From the sequence record PV611058.1: a DNA stretch of 64,000 nt; one strand, 5' to 3'. Below are positions 42,330-64,000 of the stretch, piece by piece. Numbering within the stretch: position 1 is the stretch's first letter; each line of letters begins with the position of its first letter. The notes below the pieces were generated by a model. It saw nothing but the letters and a program-made list of their open reading frames with translations, searched no databases and had not been told where the DNA came from. A program made the position numbers and the translations under genes.

Positions 42330-42418
42330 GATAAAACTCCTTAATTTAGGAGGGAGAACCATTTCCCCCTCTCTATGTAAAACATTATACATGAATCTAA
42401 GTACTATGCAAGTACTTT

Positions 42419-42751
42419 TTACATTTTAATACCTGGATTCAGGTAGCGGTGAGATCCATATTCTGGATCGGTTTCGGTCCAGTACTGTAAATCTATAGTA
42501 CCTTTAGCGTTAATCTTATCTACCAGCTTATTCATCTTAGCGTATACTACATCAGCATCGATGCGTTTAAAGCCAGTGGCTTTAGTGAAGTAGTAGTGAT
42601 TTGCTTCACTATCATTCAGGATGTACCGAGAACCGTTTGCCGTTTGTGCGATAATGATTGAGTATTCTACGTTACGGTCGAGGCCGTCGATGAATACAGA
42701 GGAAACATTAGTACGGATGAAAGCTTTAACGATAGCGATTGAAGTAGTCAT
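42419..42751 (-). CDS. hypothetical protein
   Basis: own promoter cassette and AGGAG RBS. Confidence 0.75.
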   Translation of the reverse strand: MTTSIAIVKAFIRTNVSSVFIDGLDRNVEYSIIIAQTANGSRYILNDSEANHYYFTKATGFKRIDADVVYAKMNKLVDKINAKGTIDLQYWTETDPEYGSHRYLNPGIKM

Positions 42752-42901
42752 TTTGAATCTCCTAACTTTGTGGGCCGTCGCACCATTGCCGCCCTACGAG
42801 ATACATTATCGCAGTACTGATATACTTTGTCAATACTTTTTTTATTAATAGTTTTAGTTCCACCAGCAGATAGTTACTCACCGTTATTAACTATATATTT
42901 T

Positions 42902-42985
42902 GGATACACCTATGCACCCTGTGGGCTAGTTTTTGTCTATGCGTATATAATAGCAAAGGGACTGACCGGAGTCAATCCCTTTTTT
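42902..42985 (-). ncRNA. family-1 promoter-driven two-hairpin RNA element
   Basis: TTGACT-N17-TATTAT then ...CTA-GCCC-ACA-GGGT-GC-ATAGGTGTATCC; no ORF. Confidence 0.55.
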
Positions 42986-42997
42986 TATTCTTTTTTG

Positions 42998-43198
42998 TTA
43001 GATGATTCTCCAATCATCAACGATCATGGTAAGATACCGAACCAGTGATTCGAGTGATTCGTGTTCTCGATAGTCTGCCGCTCCACCAGCGGTACAAGTA
43101 CAGCCGATTAAGCCGTTTTGTAGTTCCTGGATCTTTACGTCGATCTGGTTGGCTTTAGCTTCTTTCAGTACTTCAACCAGGGCGATAGCGATAGACAT
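42998..43198 (-). CDS. small hypothetical protein
   Basis: own cassette, GGAG RBS. Confidence 0.7.
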   Translation of the reverse strand: MSIAIALVEVLKEAKANQIDVKIQELQNGLIGCTCTAGGAADYREHESLESLVRYLTMIVDDWRII

Positions 43199-43288
43199 AA
43201 TGTTTTACTCCAAACTATTGGCGGGAGAACTATTCCCCCGCTCTATGTAAAACATTATACATTACTGGTTAGTACTGTCAAATAGTTT

Positions 43289-43546
43289 TTATGAAATATC
43301 TTCGATGTAGTCGGCCCATTTCATTTTTTCAGTACTGTCAATGGCTACCGGATTATTTGGATCAAACCATTCACCATCACCGCAATACATACCCACGGCT
43401 ACGGTTTTATAGCCATCCTGGGCCGTACACCACGACATTGCACGATAGATATGGCCTTTAACTGGTTGCAGTACTGGTAACGTTTTATGGTCTTCTACGT
43501 AGGCCATAGCTTGAGGATTTACCCGATATTGTGTGAACTGATCCAT
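43289..43546 (-). CDS. small hypothetical protein
   Basis: own promoter, AGGGG RBS. Confidence 0.7.
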   Translation of the reverse strand: MDQFTQYRVNPQAMAYVEDHKTLPVLQPVKGHIYRAMSWCTAQDGYKTVAVGMYCGDGEWFDPNNPVAIDSTEKMKWADYIEDIS

Positions 43547-43622
43547 TATGTTTCCCCTTGTAGTTAGTAAAGTTATTACATCAGTACTATCAAGCTATGT
43601 CAATAGTACTGAAATAAAACTT

Positions 43623-43847
43623 TTAGATTAGATTATTGAGGCCGTCAATGGTAGACTCACTTTCTTCTTTCTCCCATTGTCGGTAGTACTTCCATGCTTC
43701 ATGATAGGTGGCGATTAGTTCATCTTTTTGATCCTGGTTACATGCCAGTACTGAATCACGGTGAGCGGTGTTATAGATAGAATCGAATGATTTCTTCTCT
43801 TCTGCCAGGTTAGCTACTTCCCGCATCAGTTCATCAAAGTTAGCCAT
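43623..43847 (-). CDS. small acidic helical protein
   Basis: own cassette, AAGGAG RBS. Confidence 0.7.
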   Translation of the reverse strand: MANFDELMREVANLAEEKKSFDSIYNTAHRDSVLACNQDQKDELIATYHEAWKYYRQWEKEESESTIDGLNNLI

Positions 43848-43914
43848 TTTATTACTCCTTTTAGTGGGGGAGGATATCTCCCCCTATGCAAAACATTATA
43901 CTTTGTTTTAGTTA

Positions 43915-44178
43915 TTATGCAAGTACTTTTTTCATATAAACATTAAATTCTACACCGCCGTAACCTTCCACGATGATATGTTTTGCGTTATCACGTTTGC
44001 ACATAGTGAAACCATCGTTTACGTGTTTTGCATTTTCCAGGGCGACATCACCGATAGCGGCACATACGGCACTAATAACAGTATTCCGCAAAGTACTGGT
44101 ATCATTGGCGGTCATAGTAGTTTGCAGTACTACGTTGTCGTATACGTGTGCATTGATAGTGATTTCGATAGTGTTCAT
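43915..44178 (-). CDS. hypothetical protein
   Basis: start moved to MNTIE (AGGAG RBS). Confidence 0.7.
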   Translation of the reverse strand: MNTIEITINAHVYDNVVLQTTMTANDTSTLRNTVISAVCAAIGDVALENAKHVNDGFTMCKRDNAKHIIVEGYGGVEFNVYMKKVLA

Positions 44179-44265
44179 GGTGTATCTCCTGGACTTGAGG
44201 GGAAACCATTTCCCCCTCTCGATATAAAACATTATACGTTAATCTAACTACAATGCAAGTACTTT

Positions 44266-44457
44266 TTAAATTTTATTTCCGATATAGTCCGGCATGTTCT
44301 TTTCAGTCATACGCTTTGCTAATGTCTGCATATGGCTTATAGCGTTCAAGGTGTCTTCCTCCAGGGATGAATCAAGATAATCAGGATCATTCTTCACCTT
44401 GCAATGATTATGATATCGTAGTACTGCCAGTACTTTTTTAACTTCTTCAACTGTCAT
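44266..44457 (-). CDS. small hypothetical protein
   Basis: overlaps stop of upstream gene. Confidence 0.65.
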   Translation of the reverse strand: MTVEEVKKVLAVLRYHNHCKVKNDPDYLDSSLEEDTLNAISHMQTLAKRMTEKNMPDYIGNKI

Positions 44458-44726
44458 AATAAGTACCCCACTTCGTTAGCTTTCAGGTTAGTATCAATCA
44501 TCAGTGGATTTTTGTAGTTCACAAAACGAGTAGTTTTCTCGATAGCGAAACCCATATAATCCAGCTTACTAACAGTACATTCATTCTTAAAAACTTCTTT
44601 CGCTGCATCGATGGCTGATTGCATGGATAACCGCCCATCTAAGTTAATATTTCCAAATGATCCACCAGCAGAAGTAGGATTACCGTTCATATCTTTAATG
44701 ATCATAGTAGCGGAGTAGCTGGACAT
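44454..44726 (-). CDS. small hypothetical protein
   Basis: own cassette, AAGGA RBS. Confidence 0.7.
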   Translation of the reverse strand: MSSYSATMIIKDMNGNPTSAGGSFGNINLDGRLSMQSAIDAAKEVFKNECTVSKLDYMGFAIEKTTRFVNYKNPLMIDTNLKANEVGYLL

Positions 44727-44815
44727 AATTTTGTTTCCTTTTATTGGTGTGGGGAGAACTATTCTCCCCTTGATGTAAACTATTATACAGTACTGATATA
44801 CTTTGTCAAATACTT

Positions 44816-45223
44816 TTATTCGCCCATATAGATTAGATTATCATCGCCTACATAGGGATCGCAAACGTTGATTTCTTCGCAGTACTTCGTGAATACATCG
44901 CCATAGTGACCTAAACCACGATCCCAAAAACCAGTTCCGTGACCTTCGCGGGTAAGGAACAGATCATGACCAGCTTGCTCATAACCGTAATCAATAAACA
45001 TACCGCGAACTACTTCCAGATCATTACCGTGTTTCTCAATGAAGCGAGAACATGCAATCACTGCCGCTTGATGGGCTTGCTCTGATAATTCATAATCTTC
45101 CAGGTAATCGCCGTTCTCATTGTGTACAGTACTGAATTGCATAGCTTCAATGTAAGCTACAACCATTGCAGCATGATTTTTATCGTTAGTGATGTTCCGA
45201 GCGAGATTAGTAGTAGTAGACAT
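44816..45223 (-). CDS. conserved phage hypothetical protein (GHDLFLTREGHGTGFWDR motif)
   Basis: motif pattern recurrent in phage proteins of unknown function; own cassette. Confidence 0.75.
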   Translation of the reverse strand: MSTTTNLARNITNDKNHAAMVVAYIEAMQFSTVHNENGDYLEDYELSEQAHQAAVIACSRFIEKHGNDLEVVRGMFIDYGYEQAGHDLFLTREGHGTGFWDRGLGHYGDVFTKYCEEINVCDPYVGDDNLIYMGE

Positions 45224-45306
45224 GATTTTATTCCTTATTGTATTGGGGAGAACTATTCTCCCCTTGATGTAAACTATTATACAGTACTGATATACTTTGT
45301 CAATAC

Positions 45307-45528
45307 TTAATTACGTTTAAAATGATATGTGCCTTTATCATCCTGTACGCCCCATACTGATTTACCATCAACACCAGTGAAACCGGATTGTAATTCAATA
45401 TGGAAACCATTATTATCAACTACAAAAACTTTTTTATTTTCATCCCGATAACATTGATATTCTGAATCAACATTAAAGGCCGCATCATTCAGTAGATTGG
45501 AAGCGTAAATGCAAGTCATTGTAGTCAT
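45307..45528 (-). CDS. small hypothetical protein
   Basis: own cassette, AAGGA RBS. Confidence 0.7.
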   Translation of the reverse strand: MTTMTCIYASNLLNDAAFNVDSEYQCYRDENKKVFVVDNNGFHIELQSGFTGVDGKSVWGVQDDKGTYHFKRN

Positions 45529-45650
45529 GATTTTATTCCTTATTGCCAGGGAGAACCGTTCCCCCTCTCGATATAAAACATTATACTTGATTCTAAGTAC
45601 AATGCAAGTACTTTTTAAAAAATAGTTTTCAGTACTGAATACTTATATAA

Positions 45651-45740
45651 TAGATACACTTCCGCACCCTATGGGTCAGTGAGTTATCTCTCAATGGATA
45701 TATAATAGCAAAGGGACTGACCGGAGTCAATCCCTTTTTT
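45651..45740 (-). ncRNA. family-1 two-hairpin RNA element
   Basis: TTGACT-N17-TATTAT; GAG-AGATAA-CTC-ACTG-ACCC-ATA-GGGT-GC-GGAAGTGTATCTA. Confidence 0.6.
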
Positions 45741-45748
45741 AATCTTTT

Positions 45749-46333
45749 TTATCGTGTTACCTTACTTGCTGCCACATCACGCTTTTTATAGTACTGATTC
45801 CAGATATTGCTGGTTAAACCGTAATCAAGTACTTTAATAAGTCCATTACGATCCTGGCCGATATTCTGTTTTCTGATATCTCTTATCGTTAGTGTTGATA
45901 ATGTATCATCAACGTGTTGTAGTGCATCAGCAAAGCGGTGCTGGCGTTCGATTGCATTACGTTTAATATTGTACTTTAATTCATTGCACGCGTTTACGTG
46001 CTTCACACTACCTTTGCTTGCAGTACTCAACCGATCCATAACGATAAACATATTATCAGGATCGCATAAATGCATATGCACCTTTGCAAAGTACTGTTTC
46101 AACTGAGGGCGGTCATAGTCTAAAAAATTCCATACCTTACATTCAGTTTCATTTTGTTCTACACCCGCATCACAATTCGCGACCTTAATCACTAACCGAT
46201 CATTTAAAGCGAAAACTATACGGGAAGAACCAGCACCGATGATCTCCAGGCCAGCTAACCGACAAGCTGAAAGGATCTCTTTGTTGGTTTCCATTTCTGA
46301 CAGTGTACGGATGAATTTAGTATAATTACGCAT
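45749..46333 (-). CDS. putative Ser/Thr protein kinase (minimal kinase fold)
   Basis: IGAGSSRIVF (Gly loop), VIKVA (catalytic Lys), QNETE (helix C Glu), RDIRKQNIG (catalytic loop), VLDYG (DFG-like); start moved to MRNYT (AAGGAG RBS). Confidence 0.75.
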   Translation of the reverse strand: MRNYTKFIRTLSEMETNKEILSACRLAGLEIIGAGSSRIVFALNDRLVIKVANCDAGVEQNETECKVWNFLDYDRPQLKQYFAKVHMHLCDPDNMFIVMDRLSTASKGSVKHVNACNELKYNIKRNAIERQHRFADALQHVDDTLSTLTIRDIRKQNIGQDRNGLIKVLDYGLTSNIWNQYYKKRDVAASKVTR

Positions 46334-46364
46334 TGCATGTTCTCCTTGAGTTAATGAAACTATA

Positions 46365-46607
46365 TTACAGTACTTTACTATCAATGGCAACTACTTTTTT
46401 AACATTAACGGCGTGGATCACTTCCTTCGTGTTTTTAGTACTGAATACTTTCGCCGCTCCTTGTTCGACCGTGATACGATAGCGACCATTAACATCAACC
46501 ATATTAATAAAGTCCGGCGTGCTGAATGGTGTTGTTTTACATTTGAGTACTGTTAACAGTTCCACCAGCGATGTAGTTTCTTTGATACGTTTTTCTAAAG
46601 TAATCAT
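46365..46607 (-). CDS. small hypothetical protein
   Basis: start moved to MITLE. Confidence 0.65.
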   Translation of the reverse strand: MITLEKRIKETTSLVELLTVLKCKTTPFSTPDFINMVDVNGRYRITVEQGAAKVFSTKNTKEVIHAVNVKKVVAIDSKVL

Positions 46608-46664
46608 TTTGTTTCCCCCGTGTTGGTATGTACATATAGTACTAAAACATTTGAGTACTGTCAA

Positions 46665-46883
46665 TTAGATAATATTATATTTCTTAAAATAAAATGCGTC
46701 CTGTGTTGGTTGATACTCGATACCGTTACCGTTATTGACTTCAACTAATAAACCTTTGTCAATTAGTTTTTTAATAGTACGATACCCTTGTTGAAAATTG
46801 GTAAAATGTGAATCATTACGAAAGGTATAACCGTGCTTAACTGCTTCATCAATAGTTTTCTTTTCGATTTTAGATAATTTCAT
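46665..46883 (-). CDS. small hypothetical protein (possible winged helix)
   Basis: start moved to MKLSK; TIKKLIDKGLLVEV...YQPT pattern suggests wHTH. Confidence 0.6.
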   Translation of the reverse strand: MKLSKIEKKTIDEAVKHGYTFRNDSHFTNFQQGYRTIKKLIDKGLLVEVNNGNGIEYQPTQDAFYFKKYNII

Positions 46884-46936
46884 TTTGTTTCTCCCGTGTT
46901 GGTATGTGTACATAATACTAAAACATTTGAGTACTG

Positions 46937-47191
46937 TCAACGTGATATTAGTTTTATTTTCTTATTGTATTGTTGATGCTCATAAAGGTTTATCTTTCCT
47001 GTGTTCTCGATTACTATCCTGTTGTTAGTGTCCACGTCGATTACACGCAGTTTACCGTTGCTTAACTTCCTAGGTAATAGGTTACCATTAATAAACTCAT
47101 TAGCAAGCTGTACGGCCTTTGTGATGATTCTCTGAGGTGCTTTATAGTGTACCCGTAAGATGTTATCTTTATATAGTTGAACCTTAATCAT
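46937..47191 (-). CDS. small basic hypothetical protein
   Basis: 84 aa, AGGA RBS. Confidence 0.65.
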   Translation of the reverse strand: MIKVQLYKDNILRVHYKAPQRIITKAVQLANEFINGNLLPRKLSNGKLRVIDVDTNNRIVIENTGKINLYEHQQYNKKIKLISR

Positions 47192-47204
47192 TTTGTTTGT
47201 CCTA

Positions 47205-47232
47205 TAAAAAAGGCGGGAACTGATCCCGCCGT
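47205..47232 (-). terminator. intrinsic terminator
   Basis: GGCGGGA-tcagt-TCCCGCC plus T6. Confidence 0.7.
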
Positions 47233-47252
47233 GTTGTTAGTACTGCAAGTTA

Positions 47253-47648
47253 TTAGATAACCTGGCGGCGTTTACTGTATACTGTTACACGATTACCCTT
47301 ACGATCATGTCGGATCTCTTTCTGGTTGCGAATCAGTTCACTTGGACGCTTAAGGTTTGCCAGGTGATCCGCGTGAGTCCATGCGGTGTGGTTTACCTGT
47401 ACTTTGATATCAGAATCAGCGATAAACTCATCTTGTGCGTCAAGTATTGCCGCCAGCATATCCGCTCGTTTTAGTTCTGCTGCTGTCAGTACTGGCTCAG
47501 GTGAATTCACAATATCAGAGATTTCTTTGAACTGTACGGCCCAGCGTTGACCTTTCGGTGCATCTTTGCCCATGTCTTTAAATGCTGCTCCTTCCTCGCG
47601 TGCAACAATACGGGCAGCTTCACGGGTAGCGTAGAATTTAGTAATCAT
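47253..47648 (-). CDS. hypothetical protein (paralogue of 61213..61479)
   Basis: FYATREAAR...FKDMG...GQRWAV and DRKGNRVTVY shared with 61213..61479. Confidence 0.75.
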   Translation of the reverse strand: MITKFYATREAARIVAREEGAAFKDMGKDAPKGQRWAVQFKEISDIVNSPEPVLTAAELKRADMLAAILDAQDEFIADSDIKVQVNHTAWTHADHLANLKRPSELIRNQKEIRHDRKGNRVTVYSKRRQVI

Positions 47649-47743
47649 GGTATACATCCTATTAGTTAAGTTAGTACTACAAGTTAGAGTCTATTATAAA
47701 GTACTATCTGGGCAATGTCAAATAGTACTTTAAATGGATTCTA

Positions 47744-48067
47744 TTACATGTCTTTCTTACGTTTTACATCGTAGTAGCGAACTGTAATTTCTTTGTTGAT
47801 CTCTTTCTCAATTCTGTGTAGTACTTTCTCTTTCGGGTTGAAACCTATTACAGTTTCCTTAATGATTTCTAAACCCGTGTACTCGCCTTGTGTGCCGTAA
47901 CCGTATGTAAAGGTTTCGTGTCCCAGGTCTTCCCAGCGATCACCAATCAATGCGGACACGTAGCAGGAGTGGTAAGTATTGCCGTGGCTATCAGTCCACC
48001 GATTAACTTTAATGTCAAAGGAGGTTACAATTTTCAGTTCTACTTTCTGGGTAAGGATCATAGCCAT
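47744..48067 (-). CDS. hypothetical protein (paralogue of 55124..55447)
   Basis: RWTDSHGNTYHSC...TFTYGY shared. Confidence 0.75.
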   Translation of the reverse strand: MAMILTQKVELKIVTSFDIKVNRWTDSHGNTYHSCYVSALIGDRWEDLGHETFTYGYGTQGEYTGLEIIKETVIGFNPKEKVLHRIEKEINKEITVRYYDVKRKKDM

Positions 48068-48154
48068 TTTTATTTCTCTCTCTTTGTTAGGAGGGGAACC
48101 ATTCCCCTCGCTTGATGTAAACTATTATACAGTACTAAGATACTTTGTCAATAC

Positions 48155-48337
48155 TTATTTTTTGGAAAGTTTACGCATTAATTCTACGCTTTCTTGTGAA
48201 CGTTTTGCTACCTGGCAAGCTGTATGGGCAGTAAACATTTTTGTATAGTCTGACGCTTTGCCACCGAACCGAGCGGCACGTTCACGGGCACTTGGAACTA
48301 ATACTATTTCTTTATTACAGATAGTGCACTTAGCCAT
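48155..48337 (-). CDS. small putative zinc-binding protein
   Basis: CTIC...HTAC ligand pattern; own cassette. Confidence 0.7.
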   Translation of the reverse strand: MAKCTICNKEIVLVPSARERAARFGGKASDYTKMFTAHTACQVAKRSQESVELMRKLSKK

Positions 48338-48423
48338 TTTTATTTCTCTCTCTTTGTTAGGAGGGGAACCATTCCCCCTCTCGATGTAAACTATTATACA
48401 GTACTAAGATACTTTGTCAATAC

Positions 48424-48699
48424 TTAAGTATTGTAAATGTCGTGAATAGTGATAAAGTTTTTACGACCGTAAACATGTAAATCAGTATCAATGTAGTGCT
48501 TATCAAGTACATCCTCGACGCTTAAAGACGTGTCGTGAATATCTTCATAAAATTGTGGATCAACAATCGTGCTTAAGTCATCTGGCGTTAACTTATCGTT
48601 AAGGCATTGAACCGCCTGGATATCTGCTTCACGTTTCCATTGTTCCAGATTAGTAGTCAGTACTTGCTCGATTTCGTTAGCTGTAAGTAAAGTCCGCAT
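48424..48699 (-). CDS. small acidic hypothetical protein
   Basis: own promoter, AAGGA RBS. Confidence 0.7.
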   Translation of the reverse strand: MRTLLTANEIEQVLTTNLEQWKREADIQAVQCLNDKLTPDDLSTIVDPQFYEDIHDTSLSVEDVLDKHYIDTDLHVYGRKNFITIHDIYNT

Positions 48700-48768
48700 T
48701 TTAATGTTTCCTTATCAGTGGTTGATGTAAGTATTATACTCGTTTACTTTCTATTGTCAAACTATTTT

Positions 48769-48920: not shown

Positions 48921-49005
48921 ATAGATACATTTATGCACCCTGTGGGCTGATTTGTTTCTATGCGTATATAATAGCAAAGGGACTGACCGGAGTCAATCCC
49001 TTTTT
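48921..49005 (-). ncRNA. family-1 RNA element
   Basis: TTGACT-N17-TATTAT; CA-GCCC-ACA-GGGT-GC-ATAAATGTATCTA. Confidence 0.55.
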
Positions 49006-49014
49006 CAAATATTT

Positions 49015-50754: not shown

Positions 50755-51012
50755 TTATCTCATAGATCTATGCCAACAATTACGCGGATCTCTTTTAAAA
50801 GTACTATCATGATCCTCCTGGCAAGTAATACAATACATGCACCCTATAACGGCCTGGCGTCGATTCTCAGGGATTTTATCGCCGCAGTCGCGGCAATGTA
50901 CAAGTGATTCTCTTTGTGCGTTAATTTGCTTTCTAGCGTGGTTAACGGCGGCCTGAATCACTGCATGAATCTCGTCTTGTTCGGCCCCGTCTTTCGCGTA
51001 TCCTACTGCCAT
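50755..51012 (-). CDS. TraR/DksA-family C4 zinc-finger protein
   Basis: CRDCGDKIPENRRQAVIGCMYCITCQE zinc finger; acidic N-terminal DGAEQDE coiled-coil tip region. Confidence 0.85.
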   Translation of the reverse strand: MAVGYAKDGAEQDEIHAVIQAAVNHARKQINAQRESLVHCRDCGDKIPENRRQAVIGCMYCITCQEDHDSTFKRDPRNCWHRSMR

Positions 51013-51788: not shown

Positions 51789-51878
51789 TTTGTTTCTCTC
51801 TTAGGTTAAGTTAACTACTGTTTATAAAACTTATTATACAGTACTATCAAACTATGTCAATAGTACTGGTAATATATT

Positions 51879-52058: not shown

Positions 52059-52141
52059 TTTTTAATTCCTTAGTAGTGTAGTTGATAAAAGTTATTATGT
52101 CAGTACTATCAAACTATGTCAATAGTACTGTGATAATATTT

Positions 52142-53464: not shown

Positions 53465-53553
53465 TAGATACACTTATGCACCCTGTGGGCTAGTGAGCTA
53501 TCTCTCAATGAATATATAATAGCAAAATGGCTGACCGGAGTCAACCACTTTTT
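53465..53553 (-). ncRNA. family-1 two-hairpin RNA element
   Basis: TTGACT-N17-TATTAT; GAG-AGATAG-CTC-ACTA-GCCC-ACA-GGGT-GC-ATAAGTGTATCTA. Confidence 0.6.
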
Positions 53554-53936: not shown

Positions 53937-54017
53937 TTTGTTTCTCCTGTTATTGGGGAGAATCATTTCTCCCCTTCATGTAAACTATTATACAGTACTA
54001 AAAACTAATTGCAAGTA

Positions 54018-54164
54018 CTATTTTTTAGATTTACGCAAACTTTCTACCATCTCAGGAGTAAGGCCCGGCGGGTAGGAAACTACTTCATCAACGAAACGTA
54101 AAGGGAATACCCCATCTAAGGTTGAACGTGCTTTCTTGTTAGTACTCTTTTTTGATGCTTTCAT
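54018..54164 (-). CDS. small basic hypothetical protein
   Basis: start moved to MKASK (AAGGA RBS). Confidence 0.65.
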   Translation of the reverse strand: MKASKKSTNKKARSTLDGVFPLRFVDEVVSYPPGLTPEMVESLRKSKK

Positions 54165-54773: not shown

Positions 54774-55043
54774 TTAATAGGTGTATGGTTGACGTTCAAA
54801 CAATGATTGCACGTTGTACGCCCCGCTTATGGGCTTTGCTGGTAAATCAATTTTATATTGCTCACGCTTAAAGATAATAAAACGGCAATTGTTTTTAACA
54901 TCAAAATTGATTGAACGTTCCAGTAGTTTACCATCGTGCACAAATACAAGATAACCGCTTGGTACTTGTTTTGTAGTACTGGTTGCAACCATAGACCGCC
55001 GAACATGTGTACCTGCGTCGATTAAAGTACTGATATTTTTCAT
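54774..55043 (-). CDS. small hypothetical protein
   Basis: GAGGA RBS. Confidence 0.65.
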   Translation of the reverse strand: MKNISTLIDAGTHVRRSMVATSTTKQVPSGYLVFVHDGKLLERSINFDVKNNCRFIIFKREQYKIDLPAKPISGAYNVQSLFERQPYTY

Positions 55044-57282: not shown

Positions 57283-57287
57283 TGTAC

Positions 57288-57518: not shown

Positions 57519-57539
57519 GATGTTACCCCGTAGTATCTA

Positions 57540-57839: not shown

Positions 57840-57923
57840 TTGATTATCCTTAGTTACCAGGGGGAACCGCTCCCCCTTGCGATGTAAAATATTATACAGT
57901 ACTAAAAACTAATTGCAAGTACT

Positions 57924-58160
57924 TTATGATTTTTTATAAAACATTTCAGCAGTGATATTTTTACCCGTTGGCTGTACTTTATCCAGAATTTTTTGATGTC
58001 CAGGGCGACCAAATGAATATGATCCGTAAACCGTAAACCAGTAGTTGCCATCAGTGTTTACATGTACAGCACAATAGGGTACGCCCCGCGATTCATCACT
58101 AGTAAAGTGTGATACAGTTCCCGTTACATTCGCAGACGTTGATTTGATTTGTTCGAGCAT
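57924..58160 (-). CDS. small hypothetical protein
   Basis: own cassette, AAGGA RBS. Confidence 0.7.
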   Translation of the reverse strand: MLEQIKSTSANVTGTVSHFTSDESRGVPYCAVHVNTDGNYWFTVYGSYSFGRPGHQKILDKVQPTGKNITAEMFYKKS

Positions 58161-58269
58161 TTTCTTATTCCTTAGTTACCAGGGGAACCGCTCCCCCTAT
58201 GCAAAACATTATACGCGTTTAAAAACTAATTGCAAGTATTTTAATAAAAAGTATTTGAAAAAATAGTTG

Positions 58270-58352
58270 TTGACAAGTGCATCCAGTACTGGCATAATTA
58301 CTACATCAAGACGAAACAGTCACTAACCCACCGGGTGCCGAGATCCGTCTAT
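58270..58352 (+). ncRNA. family-1 two-hairpin RNA element (plus strand)
   Basis: TTGACA-N17-CATAAT; GAC-GAAACA-GTC-ACTA-ACCC-ACC-GGGT-GC; faces the bidirectional hairpin at 58377-58402. Confidence 0.6.
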
Positions 58353-58404
58353 TAAATGATTCAGTACTGAAAAAGTAACGGGGAGTTATTATCTCCCCGC
58401 GTTG

Positions 58405-58626
58405 TTATTTTGTAAGGTATAAACAGAAGTCGCCTTTATTTGCTACGCCGCCAGTGTAACGCGATGAATAGTTAGAAACGTCCTGGACTTCTGCTATTAC
58501 CAGGGTATCATCATTCAATTCGTCGCAGAAGCAAACGGCTGGATCTTGTACGCCGATTTTGTCAGCATGTTCCCGCATAGATTTCACCAGTGCTTCCAGT
58601 TGGGAAAGAGTAGTGATATTAGCCAT
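58405..58626 (-). CDS. small hypothetical protein
   Basis: start moved to MANIT (GAGGA RBS). Confidence 0.65.
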   Translation of the reverse strand: MANITTLSQLEALVKSMREHADKIGVQDPAVCFCDELNDDTLVIAEVQDVSNYSSRYTGGVANKGDFCLYLTK

Positions 58627-58710
58627 TGTATTTTCCTCATTACCAGGGAGAACCATTTCTCCCTTTGATGTAAACCATTATACAGTACTGAAAACTAATT
58701 GCAAGTACTT

Positions 58711-58899
58711 TTAATTAAATTCCATAAAATCATTTTCAACGTGCACAACAATCTGATTATTTTTAAAGGACGCAGAAAACTCTATACAATCATAAACCGC
58801 TTTTTCTGTTACCAGACTATGAGCACCAATCGGATTAATTGGGGATTGAATTGTTTCAATCTCGTTACCTTGTTCATTAACGATTAAAATATTAAACAT
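58711..58899 (-). CDS. small hypothetical protein
   Basis: AGGAG RBS. Confidence 0.65.
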   Translation of the reverse strand: MFNILIVNEQGNEIETIQSPINPIGAHSLVTEKAVYDCIEFSASFKNNQIVVHVENDFMEFN

Positions 58900-58938
58900 T
58901 GCCGTTACTCCTGGATAGTGTTAACTCGATATAAAGTA

Positions 58939-59121
58939 TTATACGCCTTTATTGCTTAGTGTCCAGTGATCACGCATCATACGCCCCGCACGATCCCAGC
59001 TAGTAGGCATGGGTATGCCTTGCAATTCGTTAGGGGAGATCTCGACCTCGATCCCTACATCAATAACAGTCATTCCAGCTTTCGCAGCTTGCTCGCGGAT
59101 AACCTCAGATAATGTTGTCAT
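58939..59121 (-). CDS. small hypothetical protein
   Basis: own promoter, AGGAG RBS. Confidence 0.65.
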   Translation of the reverse strand: MTTLSEVIREQAAKAGMTVIDVGIEVEISPNELQGIPMPTSWDRAGRMMRDHWTLSNKGV

Positions 59122-59195
59122 GATTAAAGCTCCTGGATAGTGTTAACTCGATATAAAGTATTATACAGTACTGAAAACTAATTGCAAGTACTTTT

Positions 59196-59456
59196 TCAAT
59201 ATTGTTTGTCGTTGTCTTCCTCGATGAATTGACCGACGAAATGATCTACTTTCGCTTTGAGGCTTTTATAATCTTCTTCTACTTCCTTTAAACGTTCCTG
59301 GTAGTATTCCAGGGCTTGAATATACGCCGCCTCAGCAGTTTTTGCACGCATAGCTAAATTCATTCCACGCGTTTCATCAAATAGCCAATAACCATCGGTG
59401 CAATGACTGATAGATAATGATTTACTTAGTACTGTATAGGCAATTACTTTACTCAT
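59196..59456 (-). CDS. small phage hypothetical protein
   Basis: GAGGG RBS; C-terminal coiled coil. Confidence 0.7.
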   Translation of the reverse strand: MSKVIAYTVLSKSLSISHCTDGYWLFDETRGMNLAMRAKTAEAAYIQALEYYQERLKEVEEDYKSLKAKVDHFVGQFIEEDNDKQY

Positions 59457-59513
59457 TAGATAACCCTCAGTAAAGGCGGGAACTATTACCCGCCATTATC
59501 TCAGTACTGAATA

Positions 59514-59753
59514 TTACATTCCAACCATTGCAGCACGGATCGCAGTAGTGCTATACTTAAAGCCGTCCGGCGTTGTAGTAGTACCGTTGGCTTTTAATCT
59601 GCGGTACATACATTCCGCAGCAATATCTTTAGTTCTACTTTGTGCGATGCAACTTTGAGCAAGCCGATACAATGACTCACCGTTATTAATCCAAAGGCTT
59701 ACATTCCAATGAGTTTTGTTTTTGTGTCCGTTGTAAGTTTTAGTACTAGCCAT
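59514..59753 (-). CDS. hypothetical protein (HWNVSLWINN motif; paralogue of 61566..61805)
   Basis: HKNKTHWNVSLWINN and PDGFKYSTTAIRAAMVGM shared; start moved to MASTK. Confidence 0.75.
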   Translation of the reverse strand: MASTKTYNGHKNKTHWNVSLWINNGESLYRLAQSCIAQSRTKDIAAECMYRRLKANGTTTTPDGFKYSTTAIRAAMVGM

Positions 59754-59843
59754 TTTTAAATCCTCGTTTGAGCGGGGAACCACTCCCCGCCTCGATATAA
59801 AGTATTATACGCTTTTAAACTTAGTTTGCAAGTACTTTTTAAA

Positions 59844-60455
59844 TTAATATTCGATTGATTCTACTACGCCATCAATAACATTGAATTGATACTCGTTACC
59901 CTCAATCAGTGCCGTAATGTTTTCAGTAGTGAATTGATCCTCATATGCATTCTCTAAATCACGGTACAACTTGCGGGACAATTCACGAATAGTTTCAGTG
60001 AGTAGTTCCTCAAGCTCATTAACTAACTTTTCTTGTTTTGCGGTTAAATCAGTGTAAGCCGATTCAATGTACCCGCTTACCGTGTTTTCGTGTGCGTAGC
60101 GAGAGTGTGAACGTTCTACACTCATTGCCAAATCATCTTCATTCAACAAGTGACGGATAGAACGATATTTCGTTAACGCTTTAATCTTGCGTAAAAACTT
60201 CACTGCGTCCACGTTGTCAGTACTGATTGATGCACCGTCACCTTGCGACCAAAAACCACTGTATTGCAATTCAGCTTCATCTATGCCGTATTCTGGTAGT
60301 ACTGTTTCTTTATAGTACTCGATAACGCCCTCAGCAAAGAAATTATCCTCACATGAACGCTCACGATCCCGAACCAGTTCGATAGCCGCCGTTTTTTGTT
60401 CTGCGTTCAGTTCAGAAAAAGCCATAACAAAAGTAGTAGTAGTGATAGTTTTCAT
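59844..60455 (-). CDS. conserved hypothetical protein (YSGFWSQGDGAS motif)
   Basis: motif recurrent in phage/plasmid proteins, from memory often labelled antitoxin-like; function not established here. Confidence 0.7.
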   Translation of the reverse strand: MKTITTTTFVMAFSELNAEQKTAAIELVRDRERSCEDNFFAEGVIEYYKETVLPEYGIDEAELQYSGFWSQGDGASISTDNVDAVKFLRKIKALTKYRSIRHLLNEDDLAMSVERSHSRYAHENTVSGYIESAYTDLTAKQEKLVNELEELLTETIRELSRKLYRDLENAYEDQFTTENITALIEGNEYQFNVIDGVVESIEY

Positions 60456-60523
60456 TTTGTAACCCTCATTCAGTAGTTGATGTAAGTATTATACGCTTTT
60501 ACTTTCTATTGTCAAACTATTTT

Positions 60524-60600
60524 ATCAGGGGAGTTTTTCGTGTGCCTTACTCCTGGGCTACTTAACGGGAAGTTACTTATTTCGTTCCCCGTCCTGATGT
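60524..60600 (-). ncRNA. family-2 structured RNA element
   Basis: near-copy of 48769..48843 with loop AAGGCACACGAAAA; own promoter. Confidence 0.55.
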
Positions 60601-60680
60601 AAAACATTATACGCCTTTAAACATAGTTAGCAAGTACTTTTTAAAAATAGTTTTCAGTACTGAATAGTAAAAAAAAAGTA

Positions 60681-60765
60681 TTGACAGCATTATCAAGTAC
60701 TGGCATAATAGCTACATAAAGACGAGAAAGTCACTAACCCACCGGGTGCATAACTGTAACTATAC
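60681..60765 (+). ncRNA. family-1 two-hairpin RNA element (plus strand)
   Basis: TTGACA-N17-CATAAT; GAC-GAGAAA-GTC-ACTA-ACCC-ACC-GGGT-GC. Confidence 0.6.
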
Positions 60766-60780
60766 TAAACTACTTTTTCT

Positions 60781-60860
60781 ATAGATACATCTCCGCACCC
60801 TATGGGCTACGGCTTATCTGCCAATGAATACATTATGCCAGTACTGACAAAATAAGTCAA
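60781..60860 (-). ncRNA. family-1 two-hairpin RNA element
   Basis: TTGACT-N17-CATAAT; GGC-AGATAA-GCC-GTA-GCCC-ATA-GGGT-GC-GGAGATGTATCTA. Confidence 0.6.
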
Positions 60861-60894
60861 TACCGGCAATTGTAAATTTTTCAAAAAAATATGA

Positions 60895-61125
60895 TTATAC
60901 TGCAATCGCGTCCAGGCTGTAATAATAATAAGTGCCGTATTGGTGTACTTTATTACCTTTTATTTCAGTACTGAATGAATCCGAACGATTTGCATATGAT
61001 GTTAATTTAAAGTACTTTGATTTGCTGATACGTTGCCATACACCACAGATCCGCTGTAAGTAAGTAGTTTTATTCGTGGTAGTATCTTTTACGGTTTTAA
61101 CTTCAGTCATATACATATTAGTCAT
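60895..61125 (-). CDS. small hypothetical protein
   Basis: own cassette, GGAG RBS. Confidence 0.7.
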   Translation of the reverse strand: MTNMYMTEVKTVKDTTTNKTTYLQRICGVWQRISKSKYFKLTSYANRSDSFSTEIKGNKVHQYGTYYYYSLDAIAV

Positions 61126-61212
61126 TTTTATTACTCCAGGTTATAGGCGGGAAGAGTTCCCGCTCTCGATGTAAAACATTATACGCCTTTAAACATAGTT
61201 AGCAAGTACTTT

Positions 61213-61479
61213 TTATTCAAGTACTGCAATCTTTTTAGTACGGTACACGGTCACGCGGTTGCCCTTTCGGTCGAGCTTTATTTCTACCACTCGACGCGAT
61301 ACACTATCGGGACTTTTTAAGGCCGCTAACCAGTACTGTAATGATCTGGCGGTACTACGCTTTACAATGGCCCAACGTTTACCACGTTCCGATTGTACGC
61401 CCATATCTTTAAACGTTGCCCCGTCCTGGCGTGCGGCGATCCGAGCTTGTTCACGCGTCGCAAAATACTTAATATTCAT
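61213..61479 (-). CDS. hypothetical protein (paralogue of 47253..47648)
   Basis: FATREQAR...FKDMG...GKRWAI; DRKGNRVTVY; start moved to MNIKY. Confidence 0.7.
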   Translation of the reverse strand: MNIKYFATREQARIAARQDGATFKDMGVQSERGKRWAIVKRSTARSLQYWLAALKSPDSVSRRVVEIKLDRKGNRVTVYRTKKIAVLE

Positions 61480-61565
61480 GCTGTTGCCCTTATCGTTGGT
61501 GTATGAATAAAACACTATTATAAAGTACTATCGCAAAAAAATGATAGTACTTTAAATAAATTCTA

Positions 61566-61805
61566 TTACATTCCAACCATCGCCGCACGGATCGCAGTAG
61601 TGCTATATTTGAATCCGTCCGGTGTTTTATCTTGTCCAGTCTGTTCTAAAAATAACATCATATGACGGGCCGCATCATTGCGATTAGTATTGGCGGCAAT
61701 AAAGTCCAGGGCCAACCGATACAATCCCTCATCGTTATTAATCCACAGGCTTACATTCCAATGAGTTTTGTTTTTGTGACCTAAGAACATTTTTGATTTA
61801 GCCAT
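61566..61805 (-). CDS. hypothetical protein (paralogue of 59514..59753)
   Basis: HKNKTHWNVSLWINNDEGLY; start moved to MAKSK (GAGGA RBS). Confidence 0.75.
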   Translation of the reverse strand: MAKSKMFLGHKNKTHWNVSLWINNDEGLYRLALDFIAANTNRNDAARHMMLFLEQTGQDKTPDGFKYSTTAIRAAMVGM

Positions 61806-61897
61806 TTTTTTAATCCTCTTATATAGTGGGGAACTATTCCCCACCTGATGTAAAACATTATACGCTTTTATTCAGTACTGTCAAACTAATTTTTAAC

Positions 61898-62260
61898 TTA
61901 TTCGTAAATTTTGCCACTGTCAGCCCATACCAGGAAACGAGGCATATTATCCCATGCATCTTGTTTTAAATTTAAACCGTGTAATACTTCTGTACTTTCC
62001 ATTCCTGGTACTGGTTTACTATACACCGCGAAATTTTCGCCCATATACTGATAAGCCATCGTCAAATCACTGGCGATCATCTTATGGATCATCGCATCAA
62101 GCATCACGGTGGCGGCGTATTGTTCACGCTTAAGCGGCAGCATTTTAATCAGTTCGCGGTATGCGTCAATGTGAGTTTTAACCGTTGCCGCCGGAAGATC
62201 TTTCATATCGTCGCGGAAGTTAACCAGGTTAGCAATGATTTTAGTGATTTGAGTCGCCAT
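61898..62260 (-). CDS. hypothetical protein
   Basis: own cassette. Confidence 0.7.
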   Translation of the reverse strand: MATQITKIIANLVNFRDDMKDLPAATVKTHIDAYRELIKMLPLKREQYAATVMLDAMIHKMIASDLTMAYQYMGENFAVYSKPVPGMESTEVLHGLNLKQDAWDNMPRFLVWADSGKIYE

Positions 62261-62374
62261 CGTTTTAATCTCTTAAAAGTGAGTAGGGAAGTGTTCCCGC
62301 TCTCGATGTAAAACATTATACGCTTTTTTCAGTACTGTGCAAGTACTTTCTACAAATACTTTTAAAATAGTTTT

Positions 62375-62466
62375 CTTTCTATATAGGAGTACTATTATTC
62401 AGTACTGAATCAATCCAGGGGAACTATCTTTCTATATAGGAGTACTATTATTCAGTACTGAATCAA
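62375..62466 (+). repeat. 39-bp direct repeat (2 copies), each with two AGTACT
   Basis: CTTTCTATATAGGAGTACTATTATTCAGTACTGAATCAA at 62375-62413 and 62428-62466. Confidence 0.9.
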
Positions 62467-62618
62467 CCAAATCACTACTACACCCCATAAAACGGCCTCA
62501 GACGCATTCTAACGCATTAATACACCTAAGCTATACATTTGCACCATTCTAATCATTCCAGGGCGTTACGGGCCGTTTAAACGCGTTGAATTATTTTCAA
62601 TTATTTTGTTTTTAGGTA

Positions 62619-62702
62619 TTGACTTGATCCTGAAAAAGCGTATAATTACTACATAGACGCGAGAAAGCGGATACCCCAGGGGGTGCGGAATTGTGCCCAA
62701 AA
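62619..62702 (+). ncRNA. family-1 RNA element (variant)
   Basis: TTGACT-N16-TATAAT; CGC-GAGAAA-GCG-GAT-ACCC-CAGG-GGGT-GC. Confidence 0.5.
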
Positions 62703-62834
62703 TTCAAGATATAAAAAAAGGATACACTCCCGCACCCTAGCAGGTAAACGCACTTTCTCAGTACTGAAATATAGTACCATAGTCCGGCCCAGGATAGCAA
62801 GCAAATTAATTAAAACTTTTTTGCTTCCAGGGTA

Positions 62835-62918
62835 TTGCTTTATTTTTTCAGTACTGTATAATAGTTCCATCAAGTCGAGAAAGACTCAAGCCCACCGGGT
62901 GCATAGTTACGCCCAAAA
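62835..62918 (+). ncRNA. family-1 RNA element
   Basis: TTGCTT-N16-TATAAT; AGTC-GAGAAA-GACT-CAA-GCCC-ACC-GGGT-GC. Confidence 0.55.
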
Positions 62919-63084
62919 TTCAGTACTGAAAAAATTTTTAAAAATATCCGGCCAGGCCGTTGACATTGCCCCCAGTTTATAAGATAATGATTCCAGATTC
63001 AGAAAAATCTAACACCAGATACTGCGGGGAAACTATCCCCACGCGGTAGGGGAACTATTGGAAAAAACAAAATAAAATTTTGAT

Positions 63085-63200
63085 TTAGCCGTCTATACTT
63101 CCAGACGTGTAACCATCTAGCCGTTTAGCCGTCCAAACGTCTAGCCATCCAGCCATCCAGAAATCTAGCCGTTTAGCCGTCTAGATGGATAGCCATCTTT
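63085..63200 (+). repeat. cluster of iterated (T/C)AGCC(G/A)T heptamers
   Basis: about eight TAGCCGT/TAGCCAT/CAGCCAT units, including TCTAGCCGTTTAGCCGTC twice. Confidence 0.8.
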
Positions 63201-63607
63201 ACTTCCAGACTTCTGGAGGGCTAGACATATCTACGCCCAAAATCCATCCAGGGTAACTACACCCAAAATCCGTCAGTACTATACCATAGATCTATCTTTT
63301 GAAAGGGAGTATTCAGTACTGCCATCATAGCCCTCACTATGTTACCCTAGGAGGATGAAGACCATCATGTAGTACTGAATACTGTTAGAGGGAATCCACC
63401 AGCACAAGCTGGTGGCATAATGCTTTAGATTAAAATCAGTACTGACACCATTCTGTTAATATCAGTACTGTTATTACGATTTTCATATGAGGTTCAAAAA
63501 GATGTACCACCACAGGAGGAACTATCTTTTCTGTACTGTCTCACGACAGGAGGTAGAGTAAATGAATTGTTCGCAGCAACTCATCACCCCTTGAAGCTAT
63601 GTAGAAC

Positions 63608-63635
63608 ATTATACAGTACTGAATCATAAAGTCAA
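63608..63635 (-). promoter_or_regulatory. sigma70-type promoter with CAGTACTG in spacer
   Basis: TTGACT-TTATGATTCAGTACTG-TATAAT. Confidence 0.6.
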
Positions 63636-64000
63636 TAACTTTCTTTCATCTTTCAGTACTGATATTCTTGAGAACTACCCGACTACAAACATCATTATAT
63701 CCCACAAATCATAAACGTCCCAACGTAAATTTCAACTTTCGAAGATCCAACTTTTATTTCATAAGTACTCCAAAATTTTTAGGATCGAGATTTAGGATGG
63801 AGTACTAACCAACTTTTTGCTGGAGCCTCAAGGGGTAATTGAATTTTACCCCGAAGGGTAAAAGGGTAATTGAAATTAAGGTGAAAGTAATAATTCAGTA
63901 CTAATCATTGCGTGATTACTTTTGATTACATTTGATGTAATTTGCAAAATGGAAAAGGAGCTTGGAAACTACAAAGTACGGCAGACTTCCTCTGCCTACT

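Follow-up and report, generated by a model that had tools for sequence, protein, structure and literature searches.

In promoters such as the lambda OR/OL-type control regions and the engineered PLtetO-1 and PLlacO-1, palindromic operators lie in the spacer and just upstream of, or overlapping, the -35 hexamer. They are about two helical turns apart, so a bound protein excludes polymerase, and one factor controls many promoters. The promoters that we describe here have sites at similar positions, but the site is only 6-8 bp, it occurs about 1000 times (mostly inside genes), and no repressor gene is known. The highly iterated palindrome of cyanobacteria (HIP1, GCGATCGC) is a short exact palindrome that is over-represented genome-wide in coding DNA regardless of reading frame. 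HIP1 is lineage-specific, and a link to DNA methylases is suspected. In our case the lineage is a phage clade, the word is different, it has fixed registers at promoters, and its one-mismatch neighbors are not depleted. SPO1 TF1 and phi29 p6 are phage DNA-binding proteins that recognize their own genome as a whole and turn early sigma-A or sigma-70 promoters down. TF1 recognizes hydroxymethyluracil DNA and p6 recognizes bendability; here, a defined sequence word would be the mark, and the protein is unknown.

Long direct terminal repeats that are filled with tiny genes and many strong host-type promoters form the pre-early or host-takeover modules of other phages (T5 first-step-transfer DNA, the SPO1 terminal redundancy, the 39-kb LTR of PA5oct, and the 22.5-kb repeat of CBB). 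In the papers that we were able to search, no iterated operator-like word has been described for these modules, and we found no description of the features reported below. Finally, some promoters are methylation-sensitive because they have GATC in the -35 or -10 element (IS10 pIN, P1 cre, and the Mu mom region). A short palindrome inside core promoter elements could similarly make promoter activity depend on replication state, but our word is different, the cognate enzyme is unproven, and the number of sites and the enrichment inside genes are far larger.

AGTACT in WPEC3 and its relatives

We analyzed the last 64 kb (64,000 nucleotides; "the window") of the genome of Escherichia phage WPEC3 (PV611058.1), a Rak2/121Q-like jumbo phage. 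An earlier note had claimed that AGTACT sits at fixed, helically phased positions around the -35 box of early promoters in this region. This observation is confirmed and is far beyond chance: AGTACT occurs 267 times in the window, as compared to 17.3 +/- 4.2 times in dinucleotide shuffles. The note mixed strands when it gave promoter strings, but this is harmless because the site is a palindrome.

One correction is needed, which is that the motif is not special to this region or to promoters. AGTACT is the most over-represented hexamer of the whole genome, with 1008 copies against 112 expected under a dinucleotide model (9-fold), or about 7-fold enrichment under a second-order model with the motif masked. 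Spacing across the genome is Poisson-like, at about one site per 350 bp. Of these copies, 82% lie in ORFs. The enrichment is not a coding artefact, as AGTACT is enriched 3.3-4.4x over synonymous-codon shuffles in each of the three reading frames. The flanks are symmetric: C at -1 and G at +6 are preferred, G at -1 and C at +6 are avoided, and there is no further context. This indicates a duplex DNA site rather than an RNA signal. The fuller form is hAGTACTd, preferably CAGTACTG.

The sites evolve under purifying selection. In a comparison to 121Q, 66% of sites are conserved, versus 44-46% for hexamers that are 12-30 nt away; in the terminal repeat, the figures are 84% versus about 62%.

To examine the distribution of AGTACT, we counted it in related phages. 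121Q has 903 copies, RaK2 has 937, GAP32 has 1011, and G17 has 1034, against 134-169 for the control word. PA5oct has 15 against 40. In seven further relatives, CAGTACTG occurs 67-425 times, but it occurs only 0-4 times in SCTP-2, Atu_ph07, and XacN1, and 78 times in the 4.6-Mb chromosome of E. coli K-12. Overall, the word is enriched in all 12 of the Rak2-like genomes that we tested but not in PA5oct, SCTP-2, Atu_ph07, XacN1, or E. coli. The site is about 37 times denser in the phage genome than in the host chromosome, and its density is highest in the first-expressed regions of four genomes.

Two islands in the window lack AGTACT (Table 1). In island 1, AGTACT is replaced by AGTACA on the coding strand, and there is no AGTAC at all on the plus strand among 82 GTAC. 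The AGTACA sites fall in all three frames, and 121Q shows the same pattern. They are not significantly better conserved than controls (21 of 41 against about 16 of 41). Outside of island 1 and its neighborhood, AGTACA is not enriched (110 against 105). The island is unexplained.

Placement at early promoters

The phased sites described in the note lie inside one copy of the terminal repeat. Record positions 1-22,503 and 361,629-384,131 are identical, with 0 mismatches. We did not examine the physical ends of the DNA, but relatives have terminal repeats of about 20-22 kb judged from read coverage (PMC5259590; PMC6563267), and coverage evidence exists for CBB and G17.

In the repeat, a strict search found 40 promoters, and the union with a second search gave about 48. 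An independent consensus scan gave twelve 12/12 matches, all on the minus strand. The -35 and -10 hexamers are close to TTGACA and TATAAT, and nearly all of the strong matches are on the minus strand upstream of minus-strand ORFs, as expected for sigma-70 (RpoD-type) early promoters, in which the two hexamers are 16-18 bp apart, although transcription start sites were not mapped. All of the genes of the region lie on the minus strand.

Of the 48 promoters, 38 carry at least one AGTACT and about 10 have none. The note had put forward positional enrichment across the aligned promoters as a way to check its claim, and the sites are indeed confined to a few positions. Among the 40 strict promoters, all 45 sites that start within -12..+17 of the start of a -35 fall in five registers: -7 (3 sites), -5 (18), +5 (4), +6 (3), and +15 (17). 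None falls elsewhere (P<1e-5 against uniform placement). One further promoter, from outside the strict set, has sites at -8 and +16. The centers of these positions are about 10 bp apart. Site density is 32 per kb in promoter windows, 7.5 per kb in other noncoding DNA of the repeat, and 4.1 per kb in its coding DNA. The pair spacings of 11, 20, and 22 bp that the note gave are correct and follow from these registers.

The note's rule for spacers also holds: TATAAT goes with a 16-bp spacer, while C/GATAAT or TATTAT goes with a 17-bp spacer and TGn. The C/GATAAT promoters with a 17-bp spacer have a canonical extended -10 with TG at -15/-14 (AGTACTGnCATAAT), but in TATAAT promoters with a 16-bp spacer, the TG sits at -14/-13, so this feature does not settle whether the set as a whole is of the extended -10 type. 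In most of the WPEC3 and RaK2 promoters with a 17-bp spacer, the spacer site stays at +15, nine bases after the -35 hexamer, and the -35-side site overlaps the first T of the hexamer, which are operator-like positions. In contrast, in GAP32 promoters with a 17-bp spacer, the site moves to +16 and keeps step with the -10 hexamer.

The promoters are not mere copies of one another. They form 35 clusters at 70% identity of the variable parts, with at least 9 different spacer 9-mers before the +15 site, although several are obvious paralogs. Also, early promoters of RaK2 and GAP32, which belong to other genera, use the same registers, often with both sites 20-22 bp apart. Across the promoters examined, the registers are -8/-7/-5, +5/+6, and +15/+16 only, and pair spacings are 11 and 20-24 bp. 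These symmetric sites overlap DNA that sigma-70 RNA polymerase contacts, as operators do.

Table 1. Features of the 64-kb window. Registers give the start of AGTACT relative to the start of the -35 hexamer.
Position	Strand	Feature	AGTACT sites	Remarks
1..24860	.	Gene-dense early-side region	103	Almost all inside ORFs and in all three reading frames; part of the genome-wide scatter
611..1135	-	Phage-type N6-adenine DNA methyltransferase (174 aa)		Candidate reader only; TIGR01712 E 3e-26 (92 bits against a curated cut-off of 97), phrog_111 E 3e-57
24861..33250	-	Island 1 (8.4 kb)	None	46 AGTACA on the coding (minus) strand and none in the other orientation
35655..41629	-	Island 2 (6 kb)	None	Tandem array of roughly 25-28 paralogous genes of 65-93 aa
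41498..64000	.	Right copy of the 22,503-bp terminal direct repeat	148 (6.6 per kb)	Packed with small minus-strand genes, most with their own sigma-70 promoter
42384..42416	-	Promoter AGTAC-TTGCAT-AGTACT	Registers -5 and +6 (42411 and 42400)	11 bp apart
47693..47729	-	Promoter with a 17-bp spacer	Registers -8 and +16 (47724 and 47700)	Upstream of a conserved, basic 134-aa gene (47253-47657)
51833..51867	-	Promoter AGTACT-a-TTGACA, N9, AGTACT, G, TATAAT	Registers -7 and +15 (51862 and 51840)	22 bp apart
52094..52129	-	Promoter with a 17-bp spacer and CATAAT	Registers -7 and +15 (52124 and 52102)	AGTACTG supplies a canonical TGn extended -10
53987..54019	-	Double-site promoter with a 16-bp spacer and TATAAT	Registers -5 and +15 (54014 and 53994)	An example given in the note
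59160..59192	-	Double-site promoter AGTAC-TTGCAA, N9, AGTACT, G, TATAAT	Registers -5 (59187-59192) and +15 (59167-59172)	20 bp apart
60488..60515	-	Perfect-consensus promoter (TTGACA, 16 bp, TATAAT)	None	One of about 10 site-free promoters in the repeat
61857..61884	-	Promoter TTGAC-AGTACT	Register +5 (61874-61879)	Site overlaps the last base of the -35 hexamer
62315..62347	-	Promoter AGTAC-TTGCAC-AGTACT	Registers -5 and +6 (62342 and 62331)	11 bp apart

What might read the word

The note inferred that a phage-encoded AGTACT binder, or a methylation state, switches about 40 pre-early promoters together. This interpretation is only partly supported. Given the fixed and phased positions, the overlap with polymerase contacts, and the conserved layout in other genera, a trans-acting reader of AGTACT or a methylation state that acts on about 40-50 early promoters is the most economical reading. 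But the interpretation is incomplete, because whatever reads about 1000 copies, most of them inside genes, is not just an early-promoter regulator. It is also untested: the sequence does not give the direction of the effect (repression, activation, or an epigenetic mark), and there is no expression, footprint, or methylation evidence. Promoter activity was not measured here, as public runs that hold this DNA are kept only as contigs and give no starts or expression levels.

We tentatively propose that AGTACT is a cis-acting word of the Rak2-like jumbo phages that is read on double-stranded DNA by a clade-specific, sequence-specific factor, most simply a symmetric dimeric DNA-binding protein. 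At the early promoters of the terminal repeat, the three phased positions that bracket the -35 hexamer have centers near -36.5, -26.5, and -16.5, which overlap the DNA contacted by sigma region 4 and region 3. In this view, occupancy would exclude RNA polymerase and would shut the pre-early genes off together once the factor has accumulated. The enrichment, the registers, the conservation across genera, and the purifying selection are demonstrated by our analysis; that a protein binds the site, that it represses, and that the same factor reads the sites inside genes are our inferences. We did not identify a binder. There are 123 clade-specific conserved proteins, and none of the 29 that we scanned against protein families has a DNA-binding annotation. 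Structure models of two conserved basic proteins of the repeat had no fold match. These searches leave it undecided whether a cognate DNA-binding protein exists. Also, an exact 6-8-bp palindrome is more typical of restriction or modification enzymes than of repressors, a homodimeric binder does not predict the one-strand AGTACA of island 1, and the shifted site in GAP32 and the promoters without sites do not fit easily. Part of the site also supplies a TG just upstream of the -10, which may itself strengthen the promoter.

The main alternative, which we consider unlikely but cannot dismiss, is that AGTACT is the target of a phage DNA modification enzyme, such as an adenine methylase. Modified parental DNA and newly replicated, under-modified DNA would then differ at bases next to the -35 and -10 elements, and the early promoters would be switched epigenetically, much as Dam controls promoters that contain GATC. 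An exact short palindrome with only one flanking preference is typical of modification enzymes. The N6-adenine methylase (Table 1) has an ortholog in every AGTACT-rich genome that we tested; it is absent from PA5oct, Atu_ph07, and XacN1, and SCTP-2 has only a weak hit with an internal stop. RaK2 DNA is reported to resist many restriction enzymes and to encode two methylases (PMC3622015), and HIP1 is a precedent for iterated palindromes that are linked to methylases. However, about 120 other genes share this phyletic pattern, members of this methylase family act on GATC or are non-specific, and the specificity of this methylase is not known. A methylation target need not be 7-9 times over-represented or conserved inside genes. 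Near-cognate words are at 1.0-2.2 times expectation and none is depleted, which argues against a repair-driven origin. Nor does AGTACT look like a restriction target, which would be avoided in phage DNA. True avoidance is seen for CTGCAG, CCATGG, GGTACC, CAGCTG, and GCGC (PstI, NcoI, and KpnI sites and GCGC are all at zero), which suggests that the DNA is exposed to restriction enzymes rather than generally protected by modification.

Somewhat less likely still, an injected or early factor might bind AGTACT as a positive or architectural self tag that marks, protects, or compacts phage DNA or recruits polymerase to it, and would help early transcription rather than hinder it. This would fit with the high density relative to the host and in the first-expressed regions, and early promoters must fire before any phage protein has been made. 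Site centers are offset by about 4 bp from the center of the -35 hexamer, so it is conceivable that a factor and polymerase occupy different faces of the helix. But these promoters have near-consensus hexamers and should not need help, perfect promoters without any site exist, and the site at -19..-14 lies where sigma region 3 and the polymerase contact the spacer. It is also improbable that the functional unit is AGTAC(W), read on one strand by a nickase, primase, or recombination nuclease, with the palindrome placing the unit on both strands and the promoter registers being secondary. Island 1 and the Poisson-like spacing favor this idea, but AGTACA is not enriched elsewhere, the island sites are not clearly conserved, and the concentration of sites in five registers is left unexplained. 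Unlike oriented genome words (Chi, KOPS, or one-orientation Type III sites), the main word is a palindrome, and only island 1 shows an oriented variant. We give equally little weight to there being no regulatory role at promoters, with the registers reflecting descent from a few ancestral cassettes and a genome-wide pressure for AGTACT that is tolerated only where it is harmless or supplies a useful TG. Some promoters are paralogs, the +15 site ends in TG just upstream of the -10 hexamer, and the -5 site shares its last base with the -35 hexamer. On the other hand, promoter windows have 4-8 times more sites than neighboring DNA despite being the most constrained sequence there, the whole hexamer is kept rather than only the useful bases, the promoters are diverged, and genera whose promoter DNA is unrelated use the same registers. 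Finally, titration by the phage genome of the host nucleoid-occlusion protein SlmA, whose site is a 12-bp palindrome with an AGTACT core directly flanked by G/C, has only the shared core in its favor and is effectively ruled out. There are no full sites and only 2 matches to GTnAGTACTnAC in 361 kb, and the SlmA-type flanks are avoided (GAGTACTC occurs 4 times against 223 for CAGTACTG).

Implications for Rak2-like phages

Rak2/121Q-like jumbo phages are common coliphages and therapy candidates, yet more than 80% of their genes and their whole early program are uncharacterized. A single 6-bp word that is conserved across genera, under selection, and built into most of the early promoters of the repeat gives a direct experimental handle: it can serve as bait for the reader protein or enzyme, and mutating it should disturb host takeover. 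The repeat also supplies a compact set of about 48 natural strong promoters with a putative common switch. A more speculative possibility, which is doubtful but not excluded, is that the whole clade writes AGTACT across its genome as a dedicated identity word, and that one phage-specific reader uses it both to tell phage DNA from host DNA and to time the pre-early promoters. As island 1 suggests, the reader would work strand by strand. This would be a new kind of self-marking, by sequence rather than by base modification. If the word proves to be a self tag, it would show how a phage with ordinary bases can distinguish its DNA from the host's.

Promoter registers in the terminal repeat

The window matches the last 64,000 bp of the public record of Escherichia phage WPEC3 (PV611058.1, 384,131 bp), a Rak2/121Q-like jumbo myovirus. 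Window coordinates equal record coordinates minus 320,131, and we used this identical record for the genome-wide analyses. The first 22,503 bp of the record are repeated at its end without a single mismatch, so the region described in the earlier note (42345-63640) lies inside the right copy of a long terminal repeat. Relatives have comparable repeats: 22,456 bp in CBB, from read depth and PFGE (PMC5259590); about 20 kb in G17, from coverage (PMC6563267); and 39 kb in PA5oct, from the record's own annotation. Almost all genes of the window are on the minus strand, and the repeat is filled with genes of 30-200 codons.

The earlier note claimed that AGTACT sits at fixed, helically phased positions around the -35 box of early promoters, and this observation held. 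AGTACT occurs 267 times in the window, against 17.3 +/- 4.2 expected. On the minus strand, the repeat holds 40 promoters by a strict pattern and about 48 in the union with a second pattern. An independent consensus scan found twelve perfect (12/12) promoters, all on the minus strand. Of the 48 promoters, 38 carry AGTACT.

The note had proposed positional enrichment across the aligned cassettes as a test. We examined the placement of the sites in the 40-promoter set. All 45 promoter-proximal sites fall in five registers, counted from the first base of the -35 hexamer. Register -5 (18 sites) has the form AGTAC-TTGCA and shares the T with the hexamer; register -7 (3 sites) has the form AGTACT-a-TTGACA; and register +5 (4 sites) has the form TTGAC-AGTACT. 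Register +6 has 3 sites. Register +15 (17 sites) lies nine bases after the hexamer and is followed by G and TATAAT, or by Gn and CATAAT. No site falls elsewhere between -12 and +17 (P<1e-5 against uniform placement). One more promoter uses -8/+16. An example of a double-site promoter, with sites at -5 and +15, lies at window 59160-59192. With the -10 hexamer at -12..-7, the site centres lie near -36.5, -26.5 and -16.5, so they are 10 bp apart. The pair spacings of 11, 20 and 22 bp in the earlier note follow from this, and its rule linking spacer length to the type of -10 hexamer also holds.

Site density is 32 per kb in promoter windows, 7.5 per kb in other noncoding DNA of the repeat, and 4.1 per kb in its genes. 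The promoters are mostly diverged: they form 35 clusters at 70% identity of the variable parts, with at least 9 different 9-mers before the +15 site. Most of the early promoters also share a conserved start region, with ACATC about 6 nt after the -10 hexamer and then GAGAGGGG, which serves as the ribosome-binding site. This implies very short, uniform leaders.

AGTACT across the genome and the clade

What the earlier note could not see is that AGTACT is not a promoter word in the first place. The whole record holds 1156 copies. In the non-redundant 361.6 kb there are 1008, against 112 expected from dinucleotides. It is the top hexamer (z about 120), and it is still about 7 times over a second-order model with the motif masked. 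Of the copies, 82% lie in ORFs. In the middle of the genome, coding and noncoding DNA have the same density (2.3 and 2.6 per kb), so there is no enrichment in intergenic DNA outside the early regions.

We considered several simple origins for this excess and rejected them. Counts by reading frame are 428, 161 and 289, against 131, 43 and 65 in synonymous-codon shuffles, which rules out an amino-acid or codon artefact. Sites are spread evenly along ORFs, with Poisson-like spacing and no periodicity, so neither regular spacing nor position within genes is involved. The only context is symmetric: C (42-48%) is preferred at -1 and G at +6, while G at -1 and C at +6 are avoided (6-10%). The unit is thus an 8-bp palindrome on duplex DNA, and we rejected an RNA-level signal. 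The flank preference is C/G in Asteriusvirus but A/T in GAP32. One-mismatch neighbours are at 1.0-2.2 times expectation; because these near-cognate words are not depleted, we also rejected a repair-driven (VSP-like) origin. Their abundance fits decay from selected sites rather than conversion into them. Against 121Q (84% identity over aligned DNA), 594 of 897 sites (66%) are intact, versus 44-46% of control hexamers 12-30 nt away. In the repeat, the figures are 84% versus about 62%.

AGTACT is also the top hexamer in 121Q (903 copies), RaK2 (937) and GAP32 (1011), with z of 113-137, and G17 has 1034 copies. The control word TCATGA gives 134-169. PA5oct has 15 AGTACT against 40 for the control. 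For ten further genomes we counted CAGTACTG, and the reversed control word gave 0-5 in all of these. E. coli K-12 has 78 CAGTACTG in 4.64 Mb against 60 for the control, while WPEC3 has 223 in 0.36 Mb, a 37-fold difference in density.

Copies of CAGTACTG in ten further genomes.
Genome	Copies
EJP2	425
XbC2	176
CBB	151
XaC1	119
Yersinia fHe-Yen9-04	86
Erwinia pEa_SNUABM_12	72
Salmonella 7t3	67
SCTP-2	4
Atu_ph07	2
XacN1	0

Each of the four genomes that we analysed fully has a stretch of 20-30 kb with two to three times the usual density. The AGTACT-bearing promoters of RaK2 and GAP32 lie in these stretches. They use the same registers, and many carry both sites 20-22 bp apart, although the surrounding DNA is unrelated. 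In GAP32 promoters with a 17-bp spacer, the site shifts to +16, so there it keeps step with the -10 hexamer.

Several other palindromes are absent or nearly so. In the whole public record, window included, GCGC occurs 0 times against about 220 expected; CTGCAG, CCATGG and GGTACC each occur 0 times; CAGCTG occurs once (2 counting both strands); and GATC is at 0.58 of expectation. This is classic restriction-site avoidance beside the AGTACT excess. Outside the window, the deposited sequence has several runs of 70-78 G or C (record positions 295,157-295,764), which look like an assembly or sequencing artefact.

Two tracts without AGTACT and other features of the window

The only two long AGTACT-free tracts of the whole genome lie in this window (islands 1 and 2 in the table below), and their genes are confined to Asteriusvirus. 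Island 1 is not motif-free. It has 46 AGTACA on the coding (minus) strand, none in the other orientation, and no AGTAC on the plus strand among 82 GTAC; these counts were taken from the window itself, where the island contains a run of N that was left as it is. The sites fall in all three frames, with a preference for C at -1, and CDS counts are 43 against 16.5 in synonymous shuffles. 121Q shows the same pattern, and the variant is also enriched at window 9.9-24.8 kb. Elsewhere, AGTACA is at expectation (110 against 105). We have no explanation for this island. A symmetric dimer does not predict it, and it keeps alive the idea that the word is read one strand at a time.

Features of the window discussed in this part.
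Feature	Window position	Strand	Remarks
Right copy of the terminal repeat	41498-64000		22,503 bp
Early promoters with the shared start region	42384-63640	-	
Island 1	24861-33250		8.4 kb
Run of N inside island 1	25074-25150		77 N
Island 2	35655-41629		6 kb; head-to-tail array of roughly 25-28 overlapping paralogous genes of 65-93 aa; weak excess of AGTACA on the plus strand (9 against 1.4 expected)
Phage-type N6-adenine DNA methyltransferase	611-1135	-	174 aa; TIGR01712 E 3e-26, just under the curated cut-off; phrog_111; conserved in all Rak2-like genomes tested
ParE/RelE-like protein	46937-47191	-	84 aa, basic; in the terminal repeat; conserved in RaK2 and GAP32; Atlas feature score 0.96
Conserved basic protein	47253-47657		134 aa; gene upstream of the ParE/RelE-like one; AlphaFold model pLDDT 74; no recognisable fold
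Paralogue of the 134-aa gene	61213-61515		
Conserved basic protein	54774-55043		AlphaFold model pLDDT 80
TraR/DksA-type C4 zinc-finger protein	50755-51012	-	among the pre-early genes; possible modulator of host RNA polymerase
Hairpin promoter elements (four, near-identical)	42947-42975, 45702-45730, 48968-48996, 53516-53544	-	TTGACT, 17-bp spacer, TATTAT promoter inside a 12-bp-stem hairpin (terminator-like stem followed by a promoter); none carries AGTACT

To look for a protein that reads AGTACT, we applied a phyletic filter (present in RaK2 and GAP32, absent from PA5oct), which left 123 proteins, six of them in the repeat. Scans of 29 of these against PHROGs, and of 10 of those against NCBIfam, gave no DNA-binding family: we found only a methylase, endonuclease V, endonuclease VII, lysozymes and the like. 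Atlas look-ups gave a ParE-like hit for one conserved repeat protein, which resembles ParE/RelE-type toxins, and nothing for two others. AlphaFold models of the two conserved basic repeat proteins matched no solved structure in the PDB at E<=0.001. So we could not name the reader.

Possible readers of the word

As we interpret them, the data require a sequence-specific reader of duplex AGTACT that is a trait of the enterobacterial Rak2-like clade, and a special relation between that reader and host-type early promoters. The earlier note's interpretation, that a phage-encoded AGTACT binder (or methylation state) switches about 40 pre-early promoters together, is partly supported. The enrichment, the registers, their recurrence across genera, and the conservation of the sites relative to 121Q are results of this analysis; that a protein binds the word and that it represses are inferences. 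All 24 of the public sequencing runs listed for this DNA are stored as contigs only, so they give no transcript starts, nicks or expression levels. In the papers we searched, nothing connects AGTACT with these phages: the CBB, RaK2 and G17 papers describe RpoD-like promoters, terminal repeats and methylases, but not this word, and the CBB promoter tables do not contain the motif class. Iterated palindromes and operator-bracketed promoters are both already known, but their combination in a phage clade looks new.

The main alternative is DNA modification, although we consider it unlikely. An exact 6-8-bp palindrome is enzyme-like, and the phage-type N6-adenine methylase, whose target sequence is unknown, occurs in every AGTACT-rich genome tested and is missing or broken in the four poor ones. 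However, about 120 other genes share that pattern, and a methylation target need not be abundant. A positive or architectural self tag seems less likely still, and a strand-reading enzyme or passive descent or tolerance even less likely. The passive reading is disfavoured because promoter windows are the richest DNA of all and the registers recur across genera. We rejected titration of the host protein SlmA because of the flanks.

The registers overlap the first base of the -35 hexamer and the spacer segment -19..-14, where sigma regions 4 and 3 and the polymerase touch DNA, and two sites about two turns apart bracket the -35 box. This is the classic layout of an operator pair. We therefore favour, tentatively, a phage protein that binds the word and turns the pre-early promoters off together, with the sites within genes serving as a reservoir or a genome tag.
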